A DNA stretch of 64,000 nucleotides from NCBI GenBank assembly GCA_051530055.1, contig CM121343.1, positions 32,389 to 96,388 of the forward strand. The letters are read 5' to 3'. A model generated the notes under the pieces. The model ran no database searches and was not told the DNA's origin. It was given only the letters and a program-made list of their open reading frames with translations. Of this stretch, positions 8,940 to 63,010 are shown in pieces. The stretch's first letter is position 1. Each line of letters opens with the position of its first letter. The position numbers and the translations under genes are program-made. The stretch is from Neoechinorhynchus agilis. Taxonomy: Eukaryota > Animalia > Acanthocephala.

Positions 8940-11700
8940 AAGTACTTATAATAAAGTAATAATAAAGTATAAAACGTGCAATCACCACCGTCCGAAAAAT
9001 TGGAGCTTCTCTCCTTCCTCGGTTGTCGCTATAACGAGAGCAGCATTGCCTCGTTGTACTGCGAGGGAGATATTTTGTCGAAGGAATGCACCTGCTCGTG
9101 CGTTGCCGGTCGTTTCTCTCAATTTCTCCGAGAGATCCGGGTGCAGAGTGAGTGCCGAACTGCCAAGCGCTCCATACGTCTCTACTCCTAAGGGGATAAA
9201 ATAGTGGGTCCTTGCTAATTCTCTATATTTTCGTACCTTCCTCCCTTCCGCTGCACTGGCTGCACCTCCAGGGATTTCTAGAGAGTAGGAAATGTTGCTT
9301 ACTGCGAAAGTGTCAACACACGTGGCGTCCCAGAATAGGCATTTGCCCTCTCGCAAAGGAAAGACCGAAATTCCGTCAGGTCAACGATCGTGTAGTCGAC
9401 AAAGATGGGTTGGCTCCAAAATGTTTGTAAGTTCGCCGTTCTCAACGCCCGAGAAATTACGCTATTGATCACAGAATGGCGTGAGAACCTTCCTTCTGAC
9501 TTTCGGCAAATGAGACCGTGTCGCCCGAAAGCATCAACCAAAGACCCACATCGACAGCGATGGGGCGTGCATATCGGGAGACCAAGTCTTAAGGACACTG
9601 CGATCCTCGTTACCTCATCAGTGAGAAGAGTTCCCACAGATGCCAGAGGAACAGCCTCCACCCATGCCCCGATTCTCGTGTCGAAACTGCCAACAATCTA
9701 GCTCGGACGACCCCATCGCGAAAACCTGAAAGTAGAGAGCTCTGAGCTCTCGCGACGAGAGGTCTGTCCCAGATCTACTGTCTGAGGTCATTCGCAGGAA
9801 CATGGTTAGCTTCTGTCTGCTGGCACCGTTCTTCAACTGCCACCACAAATTCTTGGTCAAGACAAAACTTTTCCTTGAGAATTTTCTTCGCTATTGGTCG
9901 ACTCCCCTCATACGATCCAAGAAAGGCATGACACAGGCAATAAAGATTGTCGCCACGCCTCATCTGAGAGCTGGACATTTAAAATACGCTCGAGACAAGC
10001 CCTCACCTTGTCGTCGAGCTCAGCCAATCCTTTCTTGTGTTTGAAGATTGTTGCTGTGCGGACCTTATATAACAATTTCGGGATAAAGAGTGCGTTCTGT
10101 ATCATATAAATCATGCTTCGTGGGCCGAGAGAGCGCTGACCCTATCACACATCAACGAAAGTTTCCGTATGATGCGACCGATCTCAGCTTCCACATTTGA
10201 ATCAAATACGCAACTACCCAAGAGGCTGAGTTGCTCTGGAGTATGAGCTCTATGTCCATTCTCGAGGTGTCCCTAATCAGCGTCTCCAAATCGCGCAGTA
10301 CAACGGAGGGATCACCTCCGAGCGTAGCCGCATCCAAATACCAAGCGCTGAAGCTGGAATGGAGAGAGTGCACTATTGGATTTACTGTTAGGGAGAATGC
10401 GATTGGACCGAGAGGATCTTTATGCTGCACTCCTCTTTCGGACCAAATAAGGTGGTCTTCGAAAAGCAAAGAAGTCGCGGTCCCGTAGGCATTAAGAAAA
10501 TACTGGAAGGCTACTGGTACGTGATCCATATTAAAGGCATTCTGAAAATCACACTTAAGAATCACGCACGGCTCTGAATTCCTCGTAGTAAAGTTTCGGC
10601 GCGCGTGGACAATAGCTTCCGCCCCGCAGGATGTGCAGCAGCCCAGTTGGACCGAGCGAAGTTGCTGCCCGGTTTTCTCTGTGATGCGTTTACAGAGAAT
10701 TTTTCCTGTAAGTCGGCGTTTTTTGTGAGGGCACATAATGATGCTCCGAAGAATAGGTATTTTGCGAGGGAATTCAGGTCCTCCCCAGTCAGGCGGTCGA
10801 CTAACCGAGAAAGCGCACTTTCTAGAGATTTAGGAGGATCCATGTACCTTTGGCTCCTCATCAGTTAATATGGTATATGCAGTCGAGGGATGTCCGTTCG
10901 GGAGGTAATATCTGATCTGAAGGATTTCTATTCGGGTTGGAACTATCCAGCCAGGGACGGTTCGTCCGGGTGAAAGGACATCGTGTCCTTTAGGTGCTGA
11001 GGCCTTAGCTCGTCAAGTTCATGACTCGAACCATTTGCAAAAGATGAGATGGCCTCTTAACTCTAAAATTTGAGTGGGTGTCCTGTTTTGTATGGAAGGA
11101 TGTGGAATTTCAAAACCGCCACCACTGCATTGGTGTTTTGATCGGAGTATTTGTAGTGTCTCGTTGTCTCCTTCTGCAAAACTGTCGGAGGATGACAATA
11201 ACAGAATTCCTCCCGGAACATCTCCGCGCGCAAGCTTCGAAGAAACACGTTCAATCAGGGATCGCTTTGAAAAACGGCAAAGAGACCCTTGCTTCGTGCG
11301 TCCCTTACGAACCTCGCGAAATTTCATTTCGAAATTGTGAAATATCTGTTCGAAGGAAGTCACCCTTTCATTAATTGTTGATGTCAAAGACACCCCAGAA
11401 TCATCACTGGTGCAAAGGACTAAGCGCGGGAATGCGAAGAGCCGTGTCTATGATGGCGCACAGTTATTTTGGAGGCAATCGCTGAACAATCCCGTAAATG
11501 CTTTGGCGACCTGATATCGTGCGCCCCTTTGGATCCGTTTCAGGACGTTCCTGGGCAAAACCCGCACGATATCAGGTATCGAAATAGAGTCAGTGGTGAT
11601 ATGGGAGGTCCCAGGCATAAACAGATTGGTTGATTGTGGTGGAGAACCAGACCCGCTACAGCGGAGATCCCGGGGACCATGGGCAAACAACCCCCTAAAA
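8940..11700 (-). mobile_element. CRE-like non-LTR retrotransposon (N-terminal HGP..C.GSG motif, RT, CCHC plus restriction-like endonuclease), degenerate
   Basis: Fragmented frames give HGPRDLRCSGSG, ILKCDFQNAFN, GVQHKDPLGP, WYLDAATLGG, CRCG..DAFGRHGLIC, RHSVIN, WDATCVDT, FIPLGVETYG and AVQRGNAA, followed by an AT-rich 3' tail. Confidence 0.9.
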
Positions 11701-14559: not shown

Positions 14560-17085
14560 CTCGATATTCTTTCACGATGATCGGACTTGATATTACTGAT
14601 TCTTGTCGGTCACGTAAAAGAAGCTGCTCCGGCGCCCAGAAAGCTACTGATAGTAGCCTGTCGGTGACTTCAACGCGATTTTACCGCATTCCGAAAGATC
14701 GCTATATGCGTTGAAAGACGAGAATCGGAACAGCCGGTACTTGGTTGAGGCGCTGGAGCGGCATGATCTCGTGTCTGCTAACACTTTATTCCGGAAGCGT
14801 CCGTGGCGTTTGGCGGCGTTTATGGGTCAAGAGAATCCGTCCAAACGTGCCATGGGAAAAAATCCCAAGAGACGCTTAGCTCAGCTTGACCATATATTGT
14901 TGAGACGTAGGGAAAAATGTCGGATTAAAAACGCTGAAACATTCACAGTTGATGGGCTGCCAACCGACCACAAGTTGGTGATGTGTCAGTTGAGCATGAG
15001 TGACTCGTTGTTCCGTACGCCTCAGCATCCTCCACGTCCGTTCTATGGCGCCCTCGCTAATGAGGAGAAGAGGAAAGAGTTCGATATCGAACTAGAGAAT
15101 CAACTGAGCTCGATGCCAGCTGCTGAAACGGACATTGATTTTTATTACAAGTCAATCTGCGACGCAGTGACCGAAGCGGCCGAGAAAACCATCCCAAAAA
15201 TGAGGCGTATAAAAGCTGCAATGGTTATATGGCAGGAGGACTGTGAATTTATGGCAATGGCTGAGCAGATCAAAACTCTAAGAAAAAGAGGAAAACGATC
15301 TGAGGCTCGCATTGCAAGTCTTGAACTTGCCAACCTCTATAATGAAAAGCAAAAAGCTTCGATAGAGGATGCAGTTCGCGGGATCGCATATAAGGAAGGT
15401 TTTGTTCGTACCTCCTTAGCATGGAAAGCGTTCGATTGAAGGTCCCTCCACGGAAATCAGAAAAAAGAGAATCGCAAATTATTTTGCGGAAATTCTCAAT
15501 TCGCCATTATCGTCTTTGGAAGTGAGTCCTGCACTTCCAAAAAGCACAATCGCCCAAGATCTGAGGCATACTTAACTGGACCGATTTCCGTGAAGGAAGC
15601 GATCGCTGCGGCGAAAATGATGCGTGCGGGACGTGCATCAGACCCAGATGGGATAATGGCAGAGGTACTGAGGTTTGAATCTATTGCCGGAAAGATCATA
15701 CCGATAATGAATGGCGTAATAAGTGGTGGCTCAATACCTCAAATCTGGCAAACGGCGCATTTAACAATGATCCCCAAGGAATGCTGCTCGACAAAGGTGG
15801 AGGACTACAGAGGTATATCCTTGATGTCCAACACCGCAAAACGTTTCAGCAGCATTTTGAGACGCCGAATTCAGCCAATCTTCGAAGCGCTTCTAAGAAT
15901 TGAACAGAACGGCTTCAGGAAAGGTCGAGGCACCACAGAGCACATATTTGCTTTGAGGAGGATCCTCGAGGAGGCACGAATTCATCAAACGGATGTGACG
16001 CTGGTATTTGCTGATTTCCGCCGAGCTTTCGATTCGGTAAATCGAACGATGATTGGCGGTATCTTAAAGGAATATGGAGTGCCGCCGATCATTGTCACAT
16101 CCGCTTTGGCATTATATAAAAACACAATGTCCGCCGTCAAGACAGCTGACGGTTTGACAGAATACTTTTCCACCACTTCAGGTGTTCTGCAGGGCGACAC
16201 ATTGGCTCCTTTCCTCTTCATCTTGGTGCTTGATTGGGTAATGAGATGGGCACTACCGAATGATGAAGATGGATTTCTTCTGTTGAGGAAAAGAGGTCGC
16301 AGGTATCCTGAGATACGCGCCTCCTACATGGCATATGCCGACGACATCGTATTGATGTCCTCAACAGTCGAAGGAGCTCAACGCATGCTAAATGGACTGT
16401 GCGAGAGGGCGAGTATGATTGGTCTGACCATCAACTCGAAAAAGACGGAATTCTTGACGATTCCGCATGTCGCGCATACAGTCTCTGGCGAAGGGCGGAA
16501 TGGCGTTGAGCAATTAAAACAGATAGAGCGGTATGCCTATCTGGGAGCTGTCGTTCCTGAGGTGAGTGCGGATGTCAGCCGACGGAGAGCTATAGCTTGG
16601 AGAGCAATGGGGCAACTTAAACCACTGTTTGACAGTGAGTCTTTGCCAGATGAACTCCGTTCGCAGCTGTTCAGGGCTCTAATTGAGAGCATTCTCTACT
16701 ACAATGCAGAGACCTGGACACTGTCACCAACGGCGACGAGGCAGTTGGACCAAAATCATTCATCTCTCTTACGTGCGGCGTTAAAGGTCAGATGGTCAGA
16801 TAAAGTGACCAACAAAGCACTGTATAAGAGAGCCGGAGTCCAACCGCCCAGTGAATATTTGCGCCGCAGACGACTGCAGTTCATGAGCAATATAATTCGG
16901 TCCGAGGCATCTTGCCCACAGGTCGTGCAACAGTTCCTTTTATGGAAGCCAACGACATTGTATCGTAAAGGCAAAGGGAACTGTCGTACATGCGATGACC
17001 TGATTTTAAGAGACGCGAATTGTCCGCATAACAGGACTGCTGTCGTGTATTTTAGATCCCTTGCGGAGTCTAATTCTATTTGACG
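14560..17085 (+). mobile_element. RTE-type non-LTR retrotransposon (partial APE endonuclease plus RT), disrupted between domains
   Basis: GDFNA and QLDHIL APE motifs. The 497-aa ORF at 15590-17083 has YRGISL, EQNGFRKGR, DFRRAFDSV, GVLQGDTLAPFLF, YADD, YLG and LYYNAETWTL. Confidence 0.9.
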
Positions 17086-23309: not shown

Positions 23310-23345
23310 TACCTGAAGAGGTCTGCATGCGGACGAAAATTCGTA
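23310..23345 (+). ncRNA. Minimal hammerhead ribozyme motif (Penelope pLTR type)
   Basis: tac CTGAAGA g GTCTG-catg-CGGAC GAAA ATTC gta: 3-bp stem I, 5-bp stem II, palindromic AAUU stem III, UUC triplet. Confidence 0.7.
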
Positions 23346-23397
23346 CAAATAAATCAGTCATCGGGGAGGTTAATAAGGTTGCAACTATCAATATATC

Positions 23398-23436
23398 TGA
23401 CTGAAGAAGTCCAGTGTGATTGGACGAAATATTTCA
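23398..23436 (+). ncRNA. Second minimal hammerhead ribozyme motif
   Basis: tga CTGAAGA a GTCCA-gtgtgat-TGGAC GAAA TATT tca: 3-bp stem I, perfect 5-bp stem II, palindromic AUAU stem III. Confidence 0.72.
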
Positions 23437-28833: not shown

Positions 28834-29344
28834 GAGGATTTGTCCGTTTGCGCTATAATAAATCTTCTTCTTGGAGATCGGGATAAGTTTAATCGTGATT
28901 ATTTGTGCTCCTCATATTAAATCTGCATCATTGCTTTAAATTATAATCAAACTTCAGTTCGGTCCACGCGACTATTTAAACTCACACGTACTTTAAAGTA
29001 TTAAAATGGTTTTCTCACAACTTAAGATTAACGACGCCAACACATAGATCAAAATATGGTACGAGAAAAAGAAGCAACGCGTCGTAATCTCAACTTTTAA
29101 TAAATAGTAAATCATACGAGCCGTGTTGAGAGGCAACACTGCAAGCATTCGGGCGACAATTGAGGACGGCTAGGCATTTTTTGCCGGATAAAGTTTTCCT
29201 CCAAGATTTTGATAAATAGATTCTAAGATTTTATTGGATATTTCGATCCACTATCTCGGATCTTCTTCAGCGATTGCTTGTAAGTATTCTACTATTTAAG
29301 TTGGAAATATATTTAAAAACCAACCAAAATCACTTTTACAATTA

Positions 29345-30334: not shown

Positions 30335-31299
30335 CAGGCTATTAAGTGATTCAATCACTTAGACTGATCAAAGATGTCGGTGAGCTCTTTGTGACCAACA
30401 GAAATCAGTCATGTCGGGATGTTCACTTTAAAATACACTTTAGAAGAATTAACTTATAAAATTGTGCTAAGGCTGATCAATTCAACCACGCTTGACCGTA
30501 GTGGAGGGGAATTACCTAAACAGAGCTATTCCGGTCTAGAAGGGACTGTGGTGGAGGTAGCCGGTTGCTGGGGACGGGGATGCGTACAAATACGGTCATG
30601 GGTATTGAGCGGATTGCGTACACCCATAAATCAGCCGTGTTTGATAAAAGATCATCTTACTACGCTTTTGGTTAAAGTCTGCAGCCGTCAATCCTCCCAG
30701 CCAAGCGACCAATGTCCCCAATCCCTGTTGTTGTTTTCATAATGATAGGCCATATATAACAAATCGAGATAAAGGAGTACCGTTCGGATCGACGAAGACG
30801 GACGGAATGTCCCACCCAAGGAAATTACGTGGCCAACGACGACCCTTCCGGTAATGTCCACAAACACTAACCTGGTTACGGATGATGATGATGATGATGG
30901 AGTAACATAGATATGGTTGAATGATAAGGGTTTACATTTGCATCTCCAAGATGGAGCGACAATGAGTACTTAATCACAGTCTCCAACATGCAACCTATAA
31001 AACGCTAACAATCATATATAGACTTTGTCGCTCTGCCAACCTTATTTTAAAAATCCACTAGGCTAAAAGTGTAGGCCGATTCGTACACGAACCAAAACAA
31101 AGGCAGAATTTATCTCCTAAAATATACCACGAATTGCGACATTATCCCATTTGTTGCGATCTCATAAGTCGTATTTTTCGTCGCATTGCTTGTACGTTTT
31201 ATACTCAATAAAAGATCGCCCACGCCCAAATAAAGTCACTTTTTAAGAAACCTACAAAAATTCCCAAAAACCTGCTTGTTGATTAAAATCCGAAATATT

Positions 31300-34600: not shown

Positions 34601-34880
34601 CGTATGGGTAATGCGGATTCAAATAAACATTTAGTTTCGTTGTCGCTATACGGGGATTTTATAAAATTCCTCCGACTCAAACAAATCAGAATAGTGTTCG
34701 ATCTTTTCGAAAAATGGACAAAAACTCTTCTAATCTCTTAGGAAGCATCAGATCTTCTCAAACGGAACAATGAGTTTCTTTCGTAGTAAATCCGTACATT
34801 AAATTTCGTCAATTATTGCTGCGGAAAATAGGCAAATTTTTAAAAAAAGTCGAGTGAAAATACGAGAGACAGTTTACGAT

Positions 34881-35104
34881 TTTTTAATCAGCGAATTATC
34901 GAATAATTGATTTGATAATTTTCAGACTTCTCGTATTCCTTCTTCAGTTTATCTAAAATAAACCTGATTGTAAGTTTTAAATGAGACGCCAACTCACACA
35001 TTTAAAACTTACAAGCAGGTTCATTTTAGATAGACCGAGGAAGGAATACGCGAAGTCCGAAAATTATCAAATCAATCAATTATTTGATAATTCGCTATAA
35101 AAAA
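34881..35104. repeat. Foldback element with about 103-bp arms and outward-facing hammerhead-like motifs
   Basis: The left arm read on the minus strand gives CTGAAGA a GGA-atacgagaag-TCT GAAA ATTA (34916-34947). The right arm gives CCGAGGA a GGA-atacgcgaag-TCC GAAA ATTA (35035-35066). Confidence 0.88.
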
Positions 35105-35445
35105 GCGAAAATGATGAACATCTTTACAATTAGGAGTCTTAATATTCTGATTTTATTATTCTTCCTGCTCTTATTTTGAAAAAAGAGGGTTAAGAAGGAT
35201 TGATGACGTTTACCCCCTTCCCCATTGCAAATTTTTGAAACAAAAAACGGTTTTTTGTTCTTGTAACAAAGTTTCAGTTGCTCTGTTTGAAGTTAGACTT
35301 TTATTCGAGGAAGGTGTGAAAATCAATACATACGATATACTTTTCTCATTGGCCAATAGATTTCGTTATTCATCAACAGAGAAAATCTTGCGGGATAATT
35401 TTGGTTAAAATAATCCCCCGGCAATAGCACATTTGATTTATTGGA

Positions 35446-36350: not shown

Positions 36351-38040
36351 GAGGAGAGACCCAACCTCACAAACTTTCAACGTTCCCTTACACGACGGGA
36401 TCCGTAATCCACTTCGAAAAAACCCGTATTCTTTGTTCAATAATTCGACATAACGTGAGGACGAATTTATAAGCTTTACCGAATATTTTGATTAAAAGTA
36501 ATATTGATTCCCTGTGATTGGATCCATACTGCCCAATCTTCTTGGATATCATAACTTGAAATGAACCTGAGGAGAGACCCAACCTCACACTCTCCTAGAA
36601 ACAATAACCACCAACGTTCCCTTACACGACGGGACCCGTAATCCACTTCGAAAAAACCCGTATTCTTTGTTCAATAATTCGACATAACGTGAGGACGAAT
36701 TTATAAGCTTTACCGAATATTTTGATTAAAAGTAATATTGATTCCCTGTGATTGGATCCATACTGCCCAATCTTCTTGGATATCATAACTTGAAATGAAC
36801 CTGAGGAGAGACCCAACCTCACACTCTCCTAGAAACAATAACCACCAACGTTCCCTTACTCGACGGGACCCGTAATCCACTTCGAAAAAACCCGTATTCT
36901 TTGTTCAATAATTCGACATAACGTGAGGACGAATTTATAAGCTTTACCGAATATTTTGATTAAAAGTAATATTGATTCCCTGTGATTGGATCCATACTGC
37001 CCAATCTTCTTGGATATCATAACTTGAAATGAACCTGAGGAGAGACCCAACCTCATAAACTCTCAACGTTCCCTTACACGACGGGACCCGTAATCCACTT
37101 CGAAAAAACCCGTATTCTTTGTTCAATAATTCGACATAACGTGAGGACGAATTTATAAGCTTTACCGAATATTTTGATTAAAAGTAATATTGATTCCCTG
37201 TGATTGGATCCATACTGCCCAATCTTCTTGGATATCATAACTTGAAATGAACCTGAGGAGAGACCCAACCTCACACTCTCCTAGAAACAATAACCACCAA
37301 CGTTCCCTTACACGACGGGACCCGTAATCCACTTCGAAAAAACCCGTATTCTTTGTTCAATAATTCGACATAACGTGAGGACGAATTTATAAGCTTTACC
37401 GAATATTTTGATTAAAAGTAATATTGATTCCCTGTGATTGGATCCATACTGCCCAATCTTCTTGGATATCATAACTTGAAATGAACCTGAGGAGAGACCC
37501 AACCTCATAAACTCTCAACGTTCCCTTACACGACGGGACCCGTAATCCACTTCGAAAAAACCCGTATTCTTTGTTCAATAATTCGACATAACGTGAGGAC
37601 GAATTTATAAGCTTTACCGAATATTTTGATTAAAAGTAATATTGATTCCCTGTGATTGGATCCATACTGCCCAATCTTCTTGGATATCATAACTTGAAAT
37701 GAACCTGAGGAGAGACCCAACCTCACACTCTCCTAGAAACAATAACCACCAACGTTCCCTAACACGACCGGACCCGTAATCCACTTCGAAAAAACCCGTA
37801 TTCTTTGTTCAATAATTCGACATAACGTGTGGACGAATTTATAAGCTTTACCGAATATTTTGATTAAAAGTAATATTGATTCCCTGTGATTGGATCCATA
37901 CTGCCCAATCTTCTTGGATATCATAACTTGAAATGAACCTGAGCAGAGACCCAACCTCACAAACTCTCAACGTTCCCTTACACGACCGGACCCGTAATCC
38001 ACTCCAAAACAAAAAACCGCATTCTTTGGACAAATCATAA
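36305..38040 (+). repeat. Tandem array of 234-bp and 218-bp units (about 7.5 units)
   Basis: Repeated ORF starts at 36588, 36822, 37056, 37274, 37508, 37726 and 37960 give spacings of 234, 234, 218, 234, 218 and 234. Confidence 0.95.
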
Positions 38041-47109: not shown

Positions 47110-50100
47110 TTGTTCAAAAATAAAATTGGACGCCTTCTCAAAACAGCTCAACAAATAATAAAACCATTTAAAATTTTAAAATCCTCTGTCTTCATGTGGA
47201 ACAATTCAGTCGAAAACATCTCGAAGAAATGGTAGTATCTCAACAAATAATAAAAGCATTTAAAATTTTAAAATCCTCTGTCTTCATGTGGAACAGCTCA
47301 GCCGAAAACATCTCGAAGAAATAAGTCAAAAATGCGATTTTGCTCAAAAACAAAAATGGACACCTTCTCAAAACAGCTCAACAAATAATAAAAGCGTTTA
47401 AAATTTTAAAATCATCTGTCTTCATGTGGAACAATTCAGCCGAAAACTTCTCAAAGAAATAAGTCAAAAATGCGATTTTGCTCAAAAACAAAAATGGACA
47501 CCTTCTCAAAACAGCTCAACAAATAATAAAAGCGTTTAAAATTTTAAAATCCTCTGTCTTCATGTGGAACATTAGCCGAAAACTCTCAGAAATAAGTCAA
47601 AAATGCGATTTTGCTCAAAAACAAAATGGACCCTTCTCAAAACAGCTCAACAAATAATAAAAGCTTTAAAATTTTAAAATCCTCTGTCTTCATGTGGAAC
47701 AATTCAGCCGAAAACTTCTCAAAGAAATAAGTCAAAAATGCGATTTTGCTCAAAAACAAAAATGGACACCTTCTCAAAACAGCTCAACAAATAATAAAAG
47801 CGTTTAAAATTTTAAAATCCTCTGCCTTCATGTGGAACCGTTAAGCCGAAAACTTCTCGGAGAAATAAAAGTCAACAATGCGATTTTGCTCAAAAACAAA
47901 AATGGACGCCTTCTCAAAACAGCTCAACAAATAATAAAACCATTTAAAATTTTAAAATCCTTTGTCTTCATGTGGAACAATTCAGCCGAAAACTTCTCGA
48001 AGAAATGGTAGTATTTCAACAAATAATAAAACCATTTAAAATTTTAAAATCCTTTGTCTTCATGTGGAACAATTCAGCCGAAAACTTCTCGAAGAAATGG
48101 TAGTATTTTAACAAATAATAAAACCATTTAAAATTTTAAAATCCTTTGTCTTCATGTGGAATAATTCAGCCGAAAACTTCTCGAAGAAATAAAAGTCAAA
48201 AATGCGATTTTGCTCAAAAACAAAAATGGACGCCTTCTCAAAACAGCTCAACAGATAAGAAAAGCATTTAAAATTTTAAAATCCTCTGTCTTCATGTGGA
48301 ACAATTCAGCCGAAAACTTCTCGAAGAAATAAAAGTCAAAAATGCGATTTTGCTCAAAAACAAGATTGGACGCCTTCTCAAAACAGCTCGACAAATAATA
48401 AACCATTTAAAATTTTAAAATCCTCTGTCTTCATGTGGAACAATTCAGCCGAAAACTTCTCAAAGAAATAAAAGTCAAAAATGCGATTTTGCTCAAAAAC
48501 AAAAATGGACACCTTCTTAAAACAGCTCAACAATAACAAAAGCATTTAAAATTTTAAAATCCTCTGTCTTCATGTGGAACAGTTCAGCCGAAAAATTCTC
48601 GAAGAAATGGTAGTAAACAATGCGATTTTGCTCAAAAACAAAAATGGACGCCTTCTCAAAACATCTCAACAAATAATAAAACCATTTAAAATTTTAAAAT
48701 CCTCTGTCTTCATGTGGAATAGTTCAGCCGAAAACATCTCGAAGAAATAAAAGTCAAAAATGCGATTTTGCTCAAAAACAAAAATGGACGCCTTCTCAAA
48801 ACAGCTCAACAAATAATTAAACCATTTAAAATTTTAAAATCCTCTGTCTTCATGTGGAATAGTTCAGCCGAAAACATCTCGAAGAAATAAAAGTCAAAAA
48901 TGCGATTTTGCTCAAAAACAAAATTGGACGCCTTCTCAAAACATCTCAACAAATAATAAAAGCATTTAAAATTTTAAAATCCTCTGTCTTCATGTGGAAC
49001 AGTTCAGCCGAAAAATTCTCGAAGAAATAAAAGTCAAAAATGCGATTTTGTTCAAAAACAAAAATGGACGCCTTCTCAAAACAGCTCAACAAATAATAAA
49101 AGCGTTTAAAATTTTAAAATCCTCTATCTTAATGTGGAACAATTCAGCCGAAAACTTCTCAAAGAAATGGTCTTCATGTGGAACATTCAGCCGAAAACTT
49201 CTAAGAAATAAAAGTCAAAAATGCGATTTTGCTCAAAAACAAAAATGGACGCCTTCTCAAAACAGCTCAACAAATAATAAAAGCATTTAAAATTTTAAAA
49301 TCCTCTGTCTTAATGTGGAACAGTTCAGCCGAAAACTTCTCGAAGAAATGGTAGTCAACAATGCGATTTTGCTCAAAAACAAAAATGGACGCCTTCTCAA
49401 AACAGCTCAACAAATAATAAAACCATTTAAAATTTTAAAATCCTCTATCTTAATGTGGAACAGTTCAGCCGAAAACATCTCGAAGAAATGGTAGTATCTC
49501 AACAAATAATAAAACCATTTAAAATTTTAAAATCCTTTGTCTTCATGTGGAACAATTCAGCCGAAAACTTCTCAAAGAAATAAAAGTCAAAAATGCGATT
49601 TTGCTCAAAAACAAAAATGGACGCCTTCTCAAAACAGCTCAACAATAATAAAAGCATTTAAAATTTTAAAATCCTCTGTCTTAATGTGGAACAGTTCAGC
49701 CGAAAAATTCTCGAAGAAATGGTAGTAAACAATGCGATTTTGCTCAAAAACAAAAATGGACGCCTTCTCAAAACAGCTCAACAAATAATAAAACCATTTA
49801 AAATTTTAAAATCCTCTGTCTTCATGTGGAACAGTTCAGTCGAAAACATCTCGAAGAAATGGTAGTATCTCAACAAATAATAAAAGCATTTAAAATTTTA
49901 AAATCCTCTGTCTTCATGTGGAACAGTTCAGCCGAAAACATCTCGAAGAAATAAAAGTCAAAAATGCGATTTTGCTCAAAAACAAAATTGGACGCCTTCT
50001 CAAAACATCTCAACAAATAATAAAACAATTTAAAATTTTAAAATCCTCTGTCTTCATGTGGAACAGTTCAGCCGAAAACATCTCGAAGAAATAAAAGTCA

Positions 50101-52220
50101 AAAATGCGATTTTGCTCAAAAACAAAATTGGACGCCTTCTCAAAACATCTCAACAATAATAAAAGCATTTAAAATTTTAAAATCCTCTGTCTTCATGTGG
50201 AACAGTTCAGCCGAAAACTTCTCGAAGAAATGGTAGTAAACAATGCGATTTTGCTCAAAAACAAAAATGGACGCCTTCTCAAAACAGCTCAACAAATAAT
50301 AAAACCATTTAAAATTTTAAAATCCTCTGTCTTCATGTGGAACAGTTCAGCCGAAAACATCTCGAAGAAATGGTAGTATCTCAACAAATAATAAAAGCAT
50401 TTAAAATTTTAAAATCCTCTGTCTTCATGTGGAACAGTTCAGCCGAAAACATCTCGAAGAAATAAAAGTCAAAAATGCGATTTTGCTCAAAAACAAAATT
50501 GGACGCCTTCTCAAAACATCTCAACAAATAATAAAAGCATTTAAAATTTTAAAATCCTCTGTCTTCATGTGGAACAGTTCAGCCGAAAACATCTCGAAGA
50601 AATAAAAGTCAAAAATGCGATTTTGCTCAAAAACAAAATTGGACGCCTTCTCAAAACATCTCAACAAATAATAAAACAATTTAAAATTTTAAAATCCTCT
50701 GTCTTCATGTGGAACAGTTCAGCCGAAAACATCTCGAAGAAATGGAGTACAACAATAATAAAAGCATTTAAAATTTTAAAATCCTCTGTCTTCATGTGGA
50801 ACAGTTCAGCCGAAAACTCTCGAAGAAATAAAAGTCAAAAATGCGATTTTGCTCAAAAACAAAATTGGACGCCTTCTCAAAACAGCTCAACAAATAATAA
50901 AACAATTTAAAATTTTAAAATCCTCTGTCTTCATGTGGAACAGTTCAGCCGAAAACATCTCGAAGAAATAAAAGTCAAAAATGCGATTTTGCTCAAAAAC
51001 AAAAATGGACGCCTTCTCAAAACAGCTCAACAAATAATAAAACAATTTAAAATTTTAAAATCCTCTGTCTTCATGTGGAACAGTTCAGCCGAAAACATCT
51101 CGAAGAAATGGTAGTATCTCAACAAATAATAAAAGCATTTAAAATTTTAAAATCCTCTGTCTTCATGTGGAACAGTTCAGCCGAAAACATCTCGAAGAAA
51201 TGGAGTCAACAATGCGATTTTGCTCAAAAACAAAATGGACGCCTTCTCAAAACAGCTCAACAAATAATAAAACAATTTAAAATTTTAAAATCCTCTGTCT
51301 TCATGTGGAACAGTTCAGCCGAAAATCTCGAAAATGGGTTGGTTTTTGGGTACTCAACAATAATAACTTTTTTAAAATCCTCTGTCTTCATGTGGAACAG
51401 TTCAGCCGAAAACATCTCGAAGAAATGGAGTCAAAATGCGATTTTGCTCAAAAACAAAATTGGACGCCTTCTCAAAACATCTCAACAAATAATAAAACAA
51501 TTTAAAATTTTAAAATCCTCTGTCTTCATGTGGAACAGTTCAGCCGAAAACATCTCGAAGAAATAAAAGTCAAAAATGCGATTTTGCTCAAAAACAAAAT
51601 TGGACGCCTTCTCAAAACATCTCAACAAATAATAAAACAATTTAAAATTTTAAAATCCTCTGTCTTCATGTGGAACAGTTCAGCCGAAAACATCTCGAAG
51701 AAATAAAAGTCAAAAATGCGATCTCAACAAATAATAAACATTTAAAATTTTAAAATCCTTGTCTTCATGTGGAATAGTTCAGCCAAAACATCTCGAAGAA
51801 ATAAAAGTCAAAATGCGATTTTGCTCAAAAACAAAATTGGACGCCTTCTCAAAACATCTCAACAAATAATAAAAGCATTTAAAATTTTAAAATCCTCTGT
51901 CTTCATGTGGAACAGTTCAGCCGAAAAATTCTCGAAGAAATAAAAGTCAAAAATGCGATTTTGTTCAAAAACAAAAATGGACGCCTTCACAAAACAGCTC
52001 AACAAATAATAAAAGCGTTTAAAATTTTAAAATCCTCTATCTTAATGTGGAACACTTCAGCCGAAAACTTCTCAAAGAAATAAAAGTCAAAAATGCGATT
52101 TTGCTCAAAAACAAAAATGGACGCCTTCTCAAAACATCTCAACAAATAATAAAACCATTTAAAATTTTAAAATCCTTTGTCTTCATGTGGAACAATTCAG
52201 CCGAAAACTTCTCGAAGAAA
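47110..52220 (+). repeat. AT-rich composite satellite with 140-bp and 92-bp monomers
   Basis: Core CAACAAATAATAAAA.CATTTAAAATTTTAAAATCCTCTGTCTTCATGTGGAACAGTTCAGCCGAAAACATCTCGAAGAAAT is joined either by a long AAAAGTCAAAAATGCG...CTTCTCAAAACA linker or by a short GGTAGTAT linker. Confidence 0.95.
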
Positions 52221-54510: not shown

Positions 54511-57500
54511 ATCCTACAAAGAATATTTCTTGGAGATTGAACTGTTCATTTTAATTGTTTTATGGCGAACTGATTTTAAACTGCCGATTGATTTCGGAGG
54601 CAAGGGACACAATCTTTTAAACGCTTTTTGATCAAGGCTTTGCTTTTATCCTACAAAGAATATTTCTTGGAGATGGAACTGTTCATTTTTATTGTTTTAT
54701 GGGGCGTAGAGAAATTTAACTGATTTTAAACTGCCGATTGATTTCGGAGGCAAGGGACACAATCTTTTAAACGCTTTTTGATCAAGGCTTTGCTTTTATC
54801 CTACAAAGAATATTTCTTGGAGATTGAACTGTTCATTTCAATTGTTTTATGGCGAACTGATTTTAAACTGCCGATTGATTTCGGAGGCAAGGGACACCAT
54901 CTTTTAAACGCTTTTTGATCAAGGTTTTGCTTTTATCCTACAAAGAATATTTCTTGGAGATGGAACTGTTCATTTTAATTGTTTGGCGTAGAGAATTAAC
55001 TGATTTTAAACTGCCGATTGATTTCGGAGGCAAGGGACACAATCTTTAAACGCTTTTTTATCAAGGTTTTGCTTTTATCCTACAAAGAATATTTCTTGGA
55101 GATGGAACTGTTCATTTCAATTGTTTTATGGCGAACTGATTTTAAACTGCCGATTGATTTCGGAGGCAAGGGACACAATCTTTTAAACGCTTTTTGATCA
55201 AGGTTTTGCTTTTATCCTACAAAGAATATTTCTTGGAGATGGAACTGTTCATTTTAATTGTTTTATGGGGCGTAGAGAAATTTAACTGATTTTAAACTGC
55301 CGATTGATTTCGGAGGCAAGGGACACAATCTTTTAAACGCTTTTTTATCAAGGTTTTGCTTTTATCCTACAAAGAATATTTCTTGGAGATGGAACGTTTT
55401 TTTGTTTTTGGTGTTCATTTTAATTGTTTTATGGGGCGTAGAGAAATTTAACTGATTTTAAACTGCCGATTGATTTCGGAGGCAAGGGACACAATCTTTT
55501 AAACGCTTTTTTATCAAGGTTTTGCTTTTATCCTACAAAGAATATTTCTTGGAGATGGAACTGTTCATTTCAATTGTTTTATGGGGCGTAGAGAAATTTA
55601 ACTGATTTTAAACTGCCGATTGATTTCGGAGGCAAGGGACACAATCTTTTAAACGCTTTTTTATCAAGGTTTTGCTTTTATTCTACAAAGAATATTTCTT
55701 GGAGATGGAACTGTTCATTTTTATTGTTTTATGGCGAACTGATTTTAAACTGCCGATTGATTTCGGAGGCAAGGGACACAATCTTTTAAACGCTTTTTGA
55801 TCAAGGTTTTGCTTTTATCCTACAAAGAATATTTCTTGGAGATGGAACTGTTCATTTTAATTGTTTTATGGGGCGTAGAGAAATTTAACTGATTTTAAAC
55901 TGCCGATTGATTTCGGAGGCAAGGGACACAATCTTTTAAACGCTTTTTTATCAAGGTTTTGCTTTTATCCTACAAAGAATATTTCTTGGAGATTGAACTG
56001 TTCATTTCAATTGTTTTATGGGGCGTAGAGAAATTTAACTGATTTTAAACTGCCGATTGATTTCGGAGGCAAGGGACACAATCTTTTAAACGCTTTTTGA
56101 TCAAGGTTTTGCTTTTATCCTACAAAGAATATTTCTTGGAGATTGAACTGTTCATTTCAATTGTTTTATGGGGCGTAGAGAAATTTAACTGATTTTAAAC
56201 TGCCGATTGATTTCGGAGGCAAGGGACACAATCTTTTAAACGCTTTTTTATCAAGGTTTTGCTTTTATCCTACAAAGAATATTTCTTGGAGATGGAACTG
56301 TTCATTTCAATTGTTTTATGGCGAACTGATTTTAAACTGCCGATTGATTTCGGAGGCAAGGGACACAATCTTTTAAACGCTTTTTTATCAAGGTTTTGCT
56401 TTTATCCTACAAAGAATATTTCTTGGAGATGGAACTGTTCATTTCAATTGTTTTATGGCGAACTGATTTTAAACTGCCGATTGATTTCGGAGGCAAGGGA
56501 CACAATCTTTTAAACGCTTTTTGATCAAGGTTTTGCTTTTATCCTACAAAGAATATTTCTTGGAGATGGAACTGTTCATTTTAATTGTTTTATGGGGCGT
56601 AGAGAAATTTAACTGATTTTAAACTGCCGATTGATTTCGGAGGCAAGGGACACAATCTTTTAAACGCTTTTTTATCAAGGTTTTGCTTTTATCCTACAAA
56701 GAATATTTCTTGGAGATGGAACTGTTCATTTTAATTGTTTTATGGGGCGTAGAGAAATTTAACTGATTTTAAACTGCCGATTGATTTCGGAGGCAAGGGA
56801 CACAATCTTTTAAACGCTTTTTTATCAAGGTTTTGCTTTTATCCTACAAAGAATATTTCTTGGAGATGGAACTGTTCATTTCAATTGTTTTATGGCGAAC
56901 TGATTTTAAACTGCCGATTGATTTCGGAGGCAAGGGACACAATCTTTTAAACGCTTTTTGATCAAGGTTTTGCTTTTATCCTACAAAGAATATTTCTTGG
57001 AGATGGAACTGTTCATTTTAATTGTTTTATGGCGAACTGATTTTAAACTGCCGATTGATTTCGGAGGCAAGGGACACAATCTTTTAAACGCTTTTTGATC
57101 AAGGTTTTGCTTTTATTCTACAAAGAATATTTCTTGGAGATGGAACTGTTCATTTTTATTGTTTTATGGCGAACTGATTTTAAACTGCCGATTGATTTCG
57201 GAGGCAAGGGACACAATCTTTTAAACGCTTTTTGATCAAGGTTTTGCTTTTATCCTACAAAGAATATTTCTTGGAGATGGAACTGTTCATTTTTATTGTT
57301 TTATGGGGCGTAGAGAAATTTAACTGATTTTAAACTGCCGATTGATTTCGGAGGCAAGGGACACAATCTTTTGAACGCTTTTTTATGAAGGTTTTGCTTT
57401 TATCCTACAAAAAATATTTCTTTGAGATGGAACTGTTCATTTTTATGGTTTTATGGCGAATTGATTTTAAACTGCCGATTGATTTCGGAGGCAAGGGACA

Positions 57501-58120
57501 CAATCTTTTAAACGCTTTTTTATCAAGGTTTTGCTTTTATCCTACAAAGAATAAAGAATTTGATTTCGGAGGCAAGGGACACAATCTTTTAAAGGCTTTT
57601 TTTATCAAGGTTTTGCTTTTATTCTACAAAGAATATTTCTTGGAGATGGAACTGTTCATTTTTATTGTTTTATGGCGAACTGATTTTAAACTGTCGATTT
57701 ATTTCGGAGGCAATGCACACAATCTTTTGAACGCTTTTTTATCAAGGTTTTGCTTTTATCCTACAAAGAATATTTCTTGGAGATTGAACTGTTCATTTCA
57801 ATTGTTTTATGGCTAACTGATTTTAAACTGCCGATTTATTTCGGAGGCAATGCACACAATCTTTTGAACGCTTTTTGATCAAGGTTTTGCTTTTATTCTA
57901 CAAAGAATATTTCTTGGAGATTGAACTGTTCATTTCAATTGTTTTATGGCGAACTGATTTTAAACTGTCGATTTATTTCGGAGGCAATGCACACAATCTT
58001 TTGAACGCTTTTTTATCAAGGTTTTGCTTTTATCCTACAAAGAATATTTCTTGGAGATTGAACTGTTCATTTTAATTGTTTTATGGCGAACTGATTTTAA
58101 ACTGCCGATTTATTTCGGAG
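54511..58120 (+). repeat. Satellite with 137-bp and 150-bp monomers
   Basis: ATCCTACAAAGAATATTTCTTGGAGATGGAACTGTTC...GATTTTAAACTGCCGATTGATTTCGGAGGCAAGGGACACAATCTTTTAAACGCTTTT repeats; the long form inserts GG...TAGAGAAATTT. Confidence 0.95.
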
Positions 58121-58286
58121 TATGCTCGAATTGCTTTTAATATTATTTTGGAATTCGTACACTGGTCTTTTTATCCACATCAACCTCTTTTTCTGTTTAA
58201 GCTGCATTTATTCTCTAAAAAAGACGATTTTTTTGTTGTGATCGCCGGCAATTTCGCTATGTTTTCACAAAAAGCATCGATTTTAG

Positions 58287-59488
58287 ATGAAACGAACAAG
58301 AGATTCTTCTAAGAAAAGATCTTCGACTCCGAAACAAGAGAATACCCGAAAATCTAATCAGTCTTCGCTCTTAAATTATTTCGGGATTTCCCAAACTCGT
58401 TCGATTGACCGTACAGATATGTCGCTTGTAAATTCGATTATTGAGGTTGGTTTAAAGATTGGTTAATTTATTAAAATTAAGTTGTCAATTGAATTCGAAT
58501 TTTCGACCCTTTCGTAGGTCTTCGTCAGGATATTGCTTGTAAGTTTTCTATAATTTAAGCTGACGAAGACCCACGAAATGGTCGAAAATTCGAGTTCAAT
58601 TGACAATTTAATTTTAATAAATTCACCAATCTTTAAATTATCTTACGTACAATATCTTTATATCGAGGTTGGTTCATCCGTTTGGATATCTGCACTTAGA
58701 TCACAATTTAATAGACCATATATTCGAACGGTTTGTTCCGTTGCTCCATGTAGTTCTCGGTATTTTAACTATAATTCTAGCTAAGCGAATTTCTGGATAA
58801 TGAGCGACTTAAGAAGGTTGTTTATCCACCAGCAGACAAGGTATTCACGTGGCTTTCGGCTTGTGAGTTCAACAAGGTAATTGTGGCTCATGTTAAAATT
58901 CAATTATTTTTTTTAAATTCGTGTTTTAGATTAAAGTCGTCATAATCGGTCAAGACCCATACCACAACGCAGGACAAGCCCATGGGCTGTGTTTCAGTGT
59001 CCTTCCTCCATGTAAACCCCCTCCGAGTTTACTTAATATATTCACTGAACTTCGACGGGATCTAAAAATTGAGACTCCAAGTCATGGCAATCTTATTGGA
59101 TGGGCTAGACAAGGTTCCTTCTTTTAGCTCATAGTCTTCATTAATTTTGTCTTTAGGCGTTCTTCTATTAAATGCATGTCTAACGGTGGTTGAAAATAAT
59201 CCCAACTCTCACAAGGGAAAAGGATGGGAAATCTTCACTGATTACGTGATTACAACGATTGCTGAACGCTTGGACAAGGTTGTATTTATGCTATGGGGAA
59301 TGGACGCTCAAAAGAAAACTTCCTTGATCAAGTCAAAAGATAAACATACAATATTATGCTCTTCTCATCCTTCGCCTTTATCGGCTCGTAGAGGATTTTT
59401 GGGATGTGGACATTTCTCCAAAGCTAACAATGCTTTAAGCGCAGTTGGACTAGACAAGATTGACTGGGCAGATCTTCCAAAAGAATAG
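58287..59488 (+). CDS. UNG: Uracil-DNA glycosylase (family 1); exons 58287-58445, 58668-58730, 58781-58876, 58930-59113, 59157-59488
   Basis: PIP-like [47 protein letters not shown] and HPSPLS; introns of 222, 50, 53 and 43 nt. Confidence 0.93.
58451..58637. repeat. Foldback element (78-bp arms) with outward-facing hammerhead-like motifs inside UNG intron 1
   Basis: Arms 58451-58528 and 58560-58637 differ at about 5 positions. The right arm reads CTGACGA a GACC-cacgaaat-GGTC GAAA ATTC. Confidence 0.9.
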
Positions 59489-59949
59489 TCCTTTTCAGTT
59501 CTGTGGACTTGATATTTAATTCGCTAACCTTCGAGATTCACAATTTCTTTTGTTTGCATACCAATTTAATCAAGATCTGCAGAGCGTGTTTTCGTTTAAA
59601 ATGATTGGACTTTGAGGTTTGCTCAATCAATTATGTTATTTACGCTTTATTTATATTGGATTCTTTTTTCAAAGGTAATGAAGATTATTGTAGGGAATAT
59701 TTACGCACTTTAAGAAGAACATTTATCCTTTGATATTATAACATCTTTAGCGTTACCGATTTCGTCCCCACAATGGATTCTCTGCCGTTATTTATTAGGT
59801 TAAGCACCCTGATAAAACAAGTCCGTTCTCACCAAAACTTTTATAAATTGAAAGAGTGAAAAATGAATAAAAATTTGGCGCTGATATCTAGAGTCAAAAC
59901 CCCGAGAAGGGCAAAGCATGAAGAAAGTTGTTACCAATGTGGTTTAACC

Positions 59950-60430
59950 ACTTTGCTTCTCGGTGAACGGTTCAGCTTTGAGCCCTTATTTGTTTTTAGT
60001 CACTATGGATAAAATCAGCAAAGGTTCGCCATGGAACATGCTTTTCGCCGACGACATCAGTCTCTCCAGCTATAATTCCCAGGATCTCAACAATGACCTA
60101 GAGAAATGGAAGGATGCTCTGGAAAGTCAAGACCTAAAAATTTCCCGGGGGAGAAATCAGTCTACGTGGGAACTAAAAGCATTTTCCTTCAAGAGACAGC
60201 GCTACAGAAATTCGACAAATTCGAGTTCCTCGGCTTTATAGTGTCGATGCAAAACGATTCACCGCCCAGAATTCATTGAGAATGAATAGCGGATGGATGG
60301 AGTAGAAAAGCCGCCGAATCGATTTATTCGAAAAGTTGAGGAAATGGAAATCGAAGGGACCAGGAAGCGCGGAAGGCCGAGAAAATGATGGAAAGATTGT
60401 GTGGCTGAGGACGACTTTTGGGAGAGAAAC
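59950..60430 (+). mobile_element. Internally deleted RTE-like LINE remnant
   Basis: GSALSPYLF, MLFADDI, then IEGTRKRGRPRK at about 60350. Confidence 0.7.
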
Positions 60431-61037: not shown

Positions 61038-63010
61038 TCAAACATTAATATTTGGAAGCACTAAGGAATTTAGCGCATCAGAAAATGTCTTTAGAATTGG
61101 TTCGAGTTCTTTTTCCACGTATTTGGATACTTGCTCCGGTGCACGTCCGATGAATGTTTTTGGGTCAAGTAGTACATCCAGTTTCCCTTTAATGCAGCTG
61201 AAATATGGATCCGACTTGATCCTATCTATAAAATCATTCGAAAGCCCTTCGGTTTTTATCCGATTTGCACACTGCTGAGATATACGTCTAATTTGCTCAT
61301 GACATTCCTGGCGGTCTTTTCCGGCGGATACCATTGCACAAATGATGTTTTCACTGCACATAAATGGCATTTCATCTCTTAAGCGAGCTTCAATAATCTG
61401 ATTAAAATAAATTTCAGATAATTCATCGTTTCGAGAAGAAGGATGAAATCACCTTTGGGTTCACAACTAGTCCATCAAAAATACTATGCAGCGTTGTTAG
61501 GATGATATCAGCGGTCAAAAACGATTCCGGGATGGATATTCGACGATTAGCACTGTCATCAAGTGTTCTCTCCATCCATTGGACAGAATAAGTTTGGAAT
61601 GCATTGGCTCCGAGTGATATTAAGTGGCGTGCTAAACCACAGACGCGTTCGCATTTCATTGGATTTCGTTTGTAGGGCATCGCTGATGAACCTACATCGA
61701 AGCGTCGATGACAAATATTTGATTATAGCAATCCAATAAGCCAACAAACCGATCTGATCATCCTCAAAAGGCTCTTCAATTTCCTTTGTGCTTGCTAGTA
61801 ATCGAATATCCGTGCATATCTAATCAAACAGACAAAAATGGTCCTAGAAGGTCTAAAAGGACATTCGACCTTATGAGCCGTTGCACCAAAGCTCGCTAAT
61901 GTGGTGATTATATCTATATCCTTTTTCCTCGTATATGTCTGACCAGAAATAATGTAGCATCTATTTTTTCGTATAGCAAAATGAAGTGAGCTTTTCTCAA
62001 AATCATCGCAAACCTACTAAATCCAGCCATTTGACTGACCAATTTGTCGAGTCGTTCGACCTAATATATTCGTTTTGATGAGTGTTTTGAGTTAGAGTGC
62101 GAAACAATTCTGAAGAAGGCTAGCGGCCGAAAATTCAATTCGCCAATCCTACAATAAATGTGGAACTTATATTCAACTTACTTTTTCGTGGTCATTATCA
62201 AACAAATGTAGAAATGAGGCCTGAGTCCCTGTGGTTCCTTTGACTCCAAGGAATTTTAAAGAATCACGGACTCGTTGAAAGTTCTCTAGATCCGTTACAA
62301 GATCCTGGAGCCACATACAAAACCTTTTTCCAACCGTTGTTGGTTGAGCAGGCCTGCATCGAATCGTAACGAAAAATCAAGATCATCTTTGAGTTACATA
62401 CTGCATGTGAGTATATCCCAATGTTGGAACACATCGATAACTTACACTGAGGCATGCAAGTGTACGGATGCATTTAGCGAGCTTTTTGGATAGAAGCTGC
62501 AAAAAGAGTACAATAGGACCAAAAAAAGAACATACCTTCCTTAAAAGAATGTTAAAACCATCACGAATCGCCATTAGATCCTAAAAATGAATGTAACTCT
62601 ATCAAATAGTCCATTTTTGGGCTCACTCCGTTATCGACCACAAACGCTGAGGTGGCACCCAAGTGGATTATTGGAGCGGCTCTCGGACACGCCTTTGAAA
62701 ACACGGCAATGTGAGCCATCACATCATGCCTACGTTTCTGTTCTTCTACTCTAGCGGCTTCGAAATCAATATTAGTCAAATTTGATTCCATCTCAGCTAT
62801 CTGCTCGTCGCTAATTCGAACACCCAGTTGCTTTTCGGCCTTAGCTAACCAAAGCCATAACCGTCGCCAAGTAGAAAATTTCTGAGCATCACTGAAATTT
62901 CTTGACATTTCAGCGCTGCAGTACCGAGAAACTAAAGGAGTTCGATATTTCCATACTTCTTCGATCACTGCTGTATCCCTTTGATTTTCAACCATGGTAA
63001 AAGCACTCAT
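61038..63010 (-). CDS. ADSL: Adenylosuccinate lyase, multi-exon; an additional 5' exon is possible
   Basis: [60 protein letters not shown] and [11 protein letters not shown]; short GT-AG introns. Confidence 0.95.

Follow-up and report, generated by a model that had tools for sequence, protein, structure and literature searches.

Introners, as reportedly set out by Huff in 2016, are transposable elements that create introns upon insertion. Some introners draw both of their splice sites from the site of insertion (Gozashti 2022, PMC9860276), and retroelement-derived introners have been described in protists (Gozashti 2025, PMC12130899); among classified introners, 82% are TIR DNA elements and 5% are non-LTR elements, Penelope elements are not mentioned, and only two animal groups are represented (PMC9860276, PMC12130899). 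Here we describe the first intron of UNG, the uracil-DNA glycosylase gene of the acanthocephalan Neoechinorhynchus agilis, which resembles introners in its insertion into a coding exon, its precise removal and its use of splice sites from a duplicated insertion site. Both splice sites are co-opted, as in the Florenciella-type introner, and an inverted-repeat structure brings the ends together. The UNG case differs in that introners form a family of introns, mostly of TIR DNA origin, whereas here a single locus in an animal carries an RNA-mediated hammerhead element whose foldback was built at the insertion site.

The closest parallels to the inserted sequence itself are found among Penelope-like elements and their non-autonomous hammerhead derivatives (min-HHRs, animal 'retrozymes'). 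In the minimal hammerheads of Penelope elements, a base 5' of stem II is left unpaired and helix III is small and palindromic; they probably act as dimers, and their motifs also occur in inverted pairs 100-700 bp apart (PMC4209133). In purified form, a Penelope-like protein was able to nick both DNA strands and extend from them, and its use of two internal RNA start sites accounts for an optional tail (PMC11167929). The UNG insert shares with this group the CUGAnGA and GAAA boxes, the unpaired base, the palindromic helix III, the two 3' ends with an optional tail, the proposed two-strand priming, a duplication of variable length and the pairing of inverted motifs; the Penelope-like tail is 30-40 nt long as against ~23-25 nt in the UNG insert, for which the window shows no linked RT/GIY-YIG ORF and Rfam no match. 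Vertebrate retrozymes are reported to be excluded from introns and exons (bioRxiv 10.64898/2026.07.22.740005), whereas the UNG copy is an intron. Two further systems are comparable. In DinoSL-tagged retrogenes of dinoflagellates, as in the loop of the UNG insert, a DNA-encoded 5' leader marks a reverse-transcribed trans-spliced RNA (PMC6050394, PMC5585692). The UNG case differs in concerning the end of a retroelement in an animal (Acanthocephala), with the relic serving as the loop of a hairpin inside an intron. In LINE-1 twin priming, or 5' inversion, both nicked strands prime cDNA and leave an inverted structure within one duplication, and the UNG insert shares this two-strand priming, as we propose it, and the inversion inside a single duplication. 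LINE-1 segments cover different parts of one RNA, whereas the UNG arms cover the same 78 nt, so that two templates, or template jumping between cDNAs, would be needed.

We analyzed the UNG locus within 64,000 nt of N. agilis DNA, a stretch referred to throughout as the window. In our preferred reading, which we hold to be probable, intron 1 is a retroelement-made intron gain, in which a non-autonomous hammerhead retroelement of Penelope type inserted into a UNG exon and is now spliced out. The gene lies at 58287-59488 on the plus strand, and the locus comprises the following features.

58287-58445, plus strand: UNG exon 1, with the start codon, a PIP-like box (QSSLLNYF) and a linker, ending ...SIIE (RNA contigs begin at 58287; translation).
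58446-58667, plus strand: intron 1, 222 nt, phase 0, GT..AG, at a lineage-specific position (RNA contigs of X1 and X2; comparison of eight animals).
58668-58730, 58781-58876, 58930-59113 and 59157-59488 (span 58668-59488), plus strand: UNG exons 2-5, catalytic domain (RNA contigs; translation; Pfam UDG).
58439-58452, plus strand: left copy of the target-site duplication, TATTGAGGTTGGTT, holding the 5' splice site GT at 58446-58447.
58661-58674, plus strand: right copy of the target-site duplication, TATCGAGGTTGGTT, holding the 3' splice site AG at 58666-58667.
58453-58533, minus strand: left arm, a copy of the element unit whose sense lies on the minus strand (ATATC and CUGACGA core ... UCUUUA), without the 3' tail.
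58534-58559, minus strand: hairpin loop, a 26-nt spliced-leader relic replacing the ...TTTTAG acceptor of most genomic copies.
58560-58637, plus strand: right arm, in which the element unit lies in sense orientation and has lost its 5' part exactly up to the CUGACGA box, with its core at 58560-58593.
58638-58660, plus strand: 3' 'tail', present on the right arm only and finishing in a second ATCTTTA.

Transcript and genomic evidence came from two RNA runs (X1 and X2) and two DNA runs (X9, raw whole-genome reads at ~15x; X6, contigs), compared over 58150-59700; the RNA evidence consists of assembled contigs of one study, not raw reads. An earlier note on this DNA had claimed that 222 nt (58446-58667) break the UNG frame, and both translation and the RNA contigs confirm this. 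With this segment removed, the gene yields an 834-nt, 277-aa product in which the UDG domain is present (translation; Pfam) and which agrees at every residue with the public model P0001 (ACOME3_008582, Neoechinorhynchus agilis); the frame restarts at 58668 with VGSSVW..., the beginning of the conserved UDG domain. Left unspliced, the frame runs six codons into the insert before a stop, the early termination that the note had foreseen. Introns 2-4, which the note had placed among introns of about 30-55 nt, measure 50, 53 and 43 nt, a range of 43-53 nt, and are skipped in the same RNA contigs as intron 1. The PIP-like box of the N. agilis protein occupies residues 25-32 instead of 4-11. Around the gene, a 137-150-bp satellite (>25 copies, 54511-58120) reaches to ~170 bp from the UNG start codon, a trans-splice acceptor is the sole upstream signal before the ATG, and a reverse-transcriptase fragment (...MLFADDI..., 59960-60200), a LINE-like remnant, lies ~0.5 kb past the stop codon.

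Two repeat structures mark intron 1, and both bear out the earlier note. The first is the direct repeat TAT(T/C)GAGGTTGGTT, which flanks the intron with 13 of 14 positions identical, the final ten all among them, and which carries the GT in its left copy and the AG in its right. Comparing donor and acceptor from -7 to +7 in the other three UNG introns in the same way gave 3-5 matches out of 14, so the repeat at intron 1 is not a splice-consensus effect. The second is the inverted repeat 58451-58528/58560-58637, with arms of 78 nt that are 94% complementary and separated by a 31-nt loop; the intron 1 segment folds as RNA at -114.8 kcal/mol, compared with -41.3 ± 4.4 for shuffled sequences (z = -16.7). 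Subtracting the 14-nt duplication leaves an insert of 208 nt (58453-58660) that starts with TAAAGAT and finishes with ATCTTTA. In the predicted fold, the base of the stem is 5 nt from the donor on one side and 30 nt from the acceptor on the other, leaving an unpaired path of ~35 nt. The 3' tail holds a branch-site-like CTTAC (58642-58646), 22 nt ahead of the acceptor, and a T-rich tract as well; GAG is a weak acceptor trinucleotide.

Each arm of the hairpin carries a hammerhead-like core. The pattern CTGACGA-A-GACC...GGTC-GAAA-ATTCGA occurs twice, at 58560-58593 on the plus strand and 58528-58495 on the minus strand, where none would be expected by chance. By our own descriptor scan, each copy consists of CUGACGA, one unpaired A, a stem II of 4-5 bp, GAAA and the palindrome AAUUCGAAUU (AAUUCGAGUU in the sense arm). 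Both arms thus contain the CUGAnGA box, unpaired base, stem II, GAAA and palindromic helix III of minimal hammerheads, and helix I is not evident. Searches with Rfam returned no match to a hammerhead family in the window or the arm, either at the gathering threshold or at E<=10, and the minimal type may not be modelled there; since helix I is also not definable, we call the motif hammerhead-like, of putative Penelope type. Long-hairpin matches to plant MIR families in Rfam were set aside as reflecting a generic foldback shape, far below threshold. Across the 64 kb, the descriptor scan found seven hammerhead-like motifs, six of them with the unpaired base. Tandem pairs of such cores, ~35-90 nt apart and of the same unpaired-base architecture, stand at 23313-23430 and 62075-62135 on the plus strand.

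We next consider copy number, which distinguishes the arms from the loop. Depth over the arms exceeds that of the flanks 5-6x in reads and ~25x in k-mer depth, whereas the loop, with 19 reads at 58536 and 15 at 58551, has the depth of a single-copy sequence. At 58533, 60 reads depart from the left arm into sequence ending ...CCTTGTTTTAG (minus strand) directly before ATATCCTGACGA; the sequence that joins the arm there in most genomic copies is ...TTTTAG/ATATC, which places a good 3' splice acceptor immediately ahead of the core. At the opposite end, other genomic and RNA copies stop at 58637 or at 58658-58660, in each case just after ATCTTTA. Given multi-copy arms and an approximately single-copy loop, the mobile unit is the arm (~85-105 nt), and the foldback was built at the UNG locus. 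A BLAST search of the 64-kb window with the element found related leader-capped units but no second copy of this one, and the window contains no second intron copy of the foldback. Pieces of the element (58484-58513, 58616-58660) are joined to unrelated sequence in two further contigs of RNA run X1, one of 987 nt at depth 42 and one of 161 nt, and copies outside the UNG locus are therefore transcribed; the match of one of these contigs stops exactly at 58660, the inferred end of the element. None of the window's eight longest ORFs combines RT and GIY-YIG domains in a Pfam scan, and the RT ORFs that are present (Pfam RVT_1, 15590-17080 and 10155-10736) have no similarity to the unit.

The loop preserves a record of the RNA from which the left arm was copied. 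In X1, the UNG contig carries 21 non-genomic letters ahead of 58287, ending ...AAAACTTACAAGCA and joined at ttttag/ATG (58266-58289), with the trans-splice acceptor AG of UNG at 58285-58286. The 3' 14 nt of the loop (58534-58547, minus strand) are identical to this mRNA leader and stand directly before ATATCCTGACGA, giving a leader junction ...CTTACAAGCA/ATATC exactly where other copies of the element carry the acceptor. A 14-nt leader match was reached by none of 2000 shuffles of the intron, and the leader 14-mer occurs five times in the window (<=1 mismatch) compared with 0.05 expected, preceding hammerhead-like units of three kinds and, in one case, an unrelated sequence. With the leader 14-mer in place of the acceptor, the left arm is directly indicated as cDNA of a trans-spliced element RNA, and a full-length cDNA of such an RNA would be the simplest reading of the sequence. 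The leader is identified from one contig end together with genomic relics, and the 64-kb window contains no SL RNA gene (leader followed by GT). Our literature search found no spliced leader reported for acanthocephalans; bdelloid rotifers have a 23-nt leader, according to a citation in PMC1925144.

Other leader relics in the window vary in sequence and setting. One at 29263-29288 matches the 26-nt loop at 23 of 26 positions and directly caps another hammerhead-like unit (CTGAAGA...GAAA; 29150-29300, minus strand), and relics at 34965-35017 match the mRNA leader over ~18 nt; the leader seems to exist in two variants or more. At 31187-31200 (minus strand), a leader-like 14-mer with one mismatch precedes ATG and unrelated sequence and may mark a processed mRNA retrocopy. 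A second head-to-head foldback, at 34873-35111, is formed by a related but decayed hammerhead-like unit with arms of ~110 nt that are ~90% complementary; the leader relics of its two arms face each other at the center, and no clear target duplication was seen. A similarity between the 3' tail of the right arm and the leader junction was judged too weak to use. The window as a whole is very repeat-rich. A satellite at 1-8060 has a 112-bp unit in 72 copies (92% matches) that holds CTGACGATCC...GGATCC...TTTCGACC and may be a decayed hammerhead-derived repeat, and further satellites lie at 47147-52220 and 36378-38003, with periods of 92/140 bp and 218-234 bp.

These observations bear on several claims of the earlier note. 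Its proposal of an RNA origin is borne out by the spliced-leader relic, and we regard the retro-insertion as shown; its hammerhead-like motif is present as a core pattern on both strands, although Rfam finds no hammerhead family, and further copies of the 78-bp arm exist by read and k-mer depth. The label of introner is supported in part: the unit is multi-copy, the insert is removed and the repeat supplies the splice sites, but the loop is approximately single-copy, and the window yielded no second intron copy that would point to a family of similar introns. Likewise, the note had called the insert Penelope-derived; the motif type and the two 3' ends fit this, while no RT/GIY-YIG partner is linked within the window, and we infer the connection to Penelope on the former grounds.

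We propose the following course of insertion. The original UNG exon would have been continuous (...ATT ATT GAG GTT GGT TCA...), with the uninterrupted site reading ...ATTATTGAGGTTGGTTCA..., and staggered nicks 14 bp apart would have led to duplication of TATTGAGGTTGGTT. Both nicked strands would then have primed reverse transcription. On the top strand, synthesis would have started at the inner AUCUUUA of a leader-trans-spliced element RNA and continued to the 5' end of the leader, producing the left arm and loop; on the bottom strand, it would have started at the outer AUCUUUA of a second RNA, producing the right arm and tail. Template jumping may have joined the two cDNAs head to head into a 208-bp, tail-out foldback. 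The motifs in question are the inner ATCTTTA at 58629-58635 (right-arm copy) and the outer one at 58654-58660, 25 nt apart; both arms start at an AUCUUUA motif, at the same two ends as other genomic copies. A snap-back origin of the right arm was rejected, as this arm carries the element's own tail and not an inverted target flank.

The same retro-derived filler and new intron could also have arisen without an element endonuclease, if two cDNA fragments were captured in inverted orientation during repair of a staggered break. Reportedly, intron gains with short direct repeats in Daphnia have been attributed to break repair, and at UNG the right-arm truncation at 58560 looks arbitrary and no autonomous partner was found in the window. 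Capture of this kind, however, does not anticipate that both arms begin exactly at the AUCUUUA motif, at the same two ends where other genomic copies stop; the ends shared among copies point to specific initiation rather than random capture. The head-to-head, leader-centered foldback also recurs, in the related unit at 34873-35111. We therefore consider break capture quite unlikely as the source of the insert.

Under retro-insertion by the element, the splice sites would follow from the target itself. The target contains AG/GT, and its duplication means that each copy offers one splice site: in GAG/GTT, the left copy would give the 5' splice site and the right copy the 3' splice site. The element's tail would offer the CTTAC branch site and T-rich tract, and the spliceosome would then take out 222 nt and restore the original codons exactly. 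The 78-bp stem would draw the ends to within ~35 unpaired nt, near the size of the 43-53-nt introns of UNG. It is also predicted to lock the sense-strand hammerhead core in duplex, and a core so held should, on this model, keep the pre-mRNA from cutting itself.

We then asked whether intron 1 is absent from mRNA. Each RNA run contains a single full-length UNG contig (862 and 850 nt, no mismatches) that skips 58443-58664, with the RNA joint at 58442->58665; moving the cut by +3 gives GT..AG at 58445/58668, and the ten ambiguous letters are the repeat. The junction 58445/58668 is hence represented in the contigs of both runs, where the joined form is the only one assembled and stands at the transcript's own depth. 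It is absent from the X9 reads (~15x) and the X6 DNA contigs, in which the left junction is present, so removal occurs at the RNA level. With no joined reads in DNA, excision at the DNA level was rejected, and no empty allele of the insertion was seen in the two DNA samples. Joints between 'opposite strands' in the read mapping were likewise rejected as other structures, being explained by AAATT indel variants between the arms. From the GT..AG borders, removal is most plausibly spliceosomal.

A reverse-transcriptase artefact could mimic such a junction, if the insertion stayed in the mature mRNA of a broken allele and the enzyme jumped between repeat copies during library preparation. The geometry for template switching is ideal, a 13/14 direct repeat around a hairpin of -115 kcal/mol; such jumps in vitro are classically seen where a direct repeat, here of 10-14 nt, lies at the foot of a very stable hairpin, and the RNA junction falls within the repeat, with ten ambiguous letters, in data that are assembled contigs. 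Yet the joined form alone was assembled, at full transcript depth and in two runs, and an artefact would need neither the canonical GT..AG nor a branch-like CTTAC 22 nt upstream; the chance that a random 10-14-nt repeat contains AGGT is estimated at only ~4%. The rest of UNG is intact: its UDG motifs are conserved and its three ancient introns are spliced. The insertion appears fixed in both DNA samples and shows its age in 1/14 and 5/78 changes. We accordingly regard an artefact as very improbable.

To place the gain in time, we compared UNG across animals. The loci of Lingula, Branchiostoma, Biomphalaria, Apostichopus, Daphnia, Actinia and Adineta were solved for exon structure exactly against their proteins, and introns were mapped on the protein alignment. 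Introns 2, 3 and 4 of N. agilis match other species' introns in both column and phase (7/7, 4/7 and 6/7, respectively) and are ancient, while intron 1 (alignment column 132, phase 0) has no counterpart in any of the seven animals, not even in the bdelloid rotifer Adineta ricciae, which is the closest relative of N. agilis among the compared species. The position is therefore lineage-specific, and comparison of these gene structures dates the apparent gain to after the split from bdelloid rotifers. N. agilis UNG has also lost several ancestral introns, namely an N-terminal one and those at alignment columns 204, 218 and 309, which are common to most animals. In protein searches, the window's own UNG was the only acanthocephalan one, and the best other matches were at most 60% identical. 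The earlier note had called the gain recent; the repeat copies differ at one of 14 nt and the arms at five of 78, and neither DNA sample shows an empty allele, which makes a very recent gain improbable. That an old intron was later hit by a transposon, or that a DNA-transposon MITE moved as a foldback unit, is scarcely credible: long terminal inverted repeats, a 10-bp flanking repeat and plant MIR long-hairpin matches (a generic foldback shape) would suit it, but the repeat spans the exon-intron-exon boundaries and its removal gives an uninterrupted exon, the position is unique among eight animals, the loop has single-copy depth, and beyond the arms other copies run into different sequence, most of them at 58533, and the spliced-leader relic in the loop needs an RNA intermediate.

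Clear, mechanistically readable intron gains are rare in animals. As a retroelement-made gain, the UNG locus can be read in its sequence: the original exon, the 14-bp duplication, the leader-marked retro origin, two Penelope-like initiation sites and exact removal. It would add hammerhead/Penelope-type retroelements to the mobile elements that create introns, and Acanthocephala to the groups in which they do so, and it suggests folding as a way for a long insert to pass as a short intron. The UNG mRNA leader provides transcript-level evidence of spliced-leader trans-splicing in Acanthocephala. Finally, a general process may be imagined in N. agilis, in which direct-repeat-flanked hairpin inserts, including two-strand-primed, leader-capped Penelope-type units, are tolerated in exons because the stem juxtaposes their ends and the splicing machinery removes them; we consider such generality unlikely, and if true, it would constitute the first ribozyme-bearing retro-introner system in an animal.
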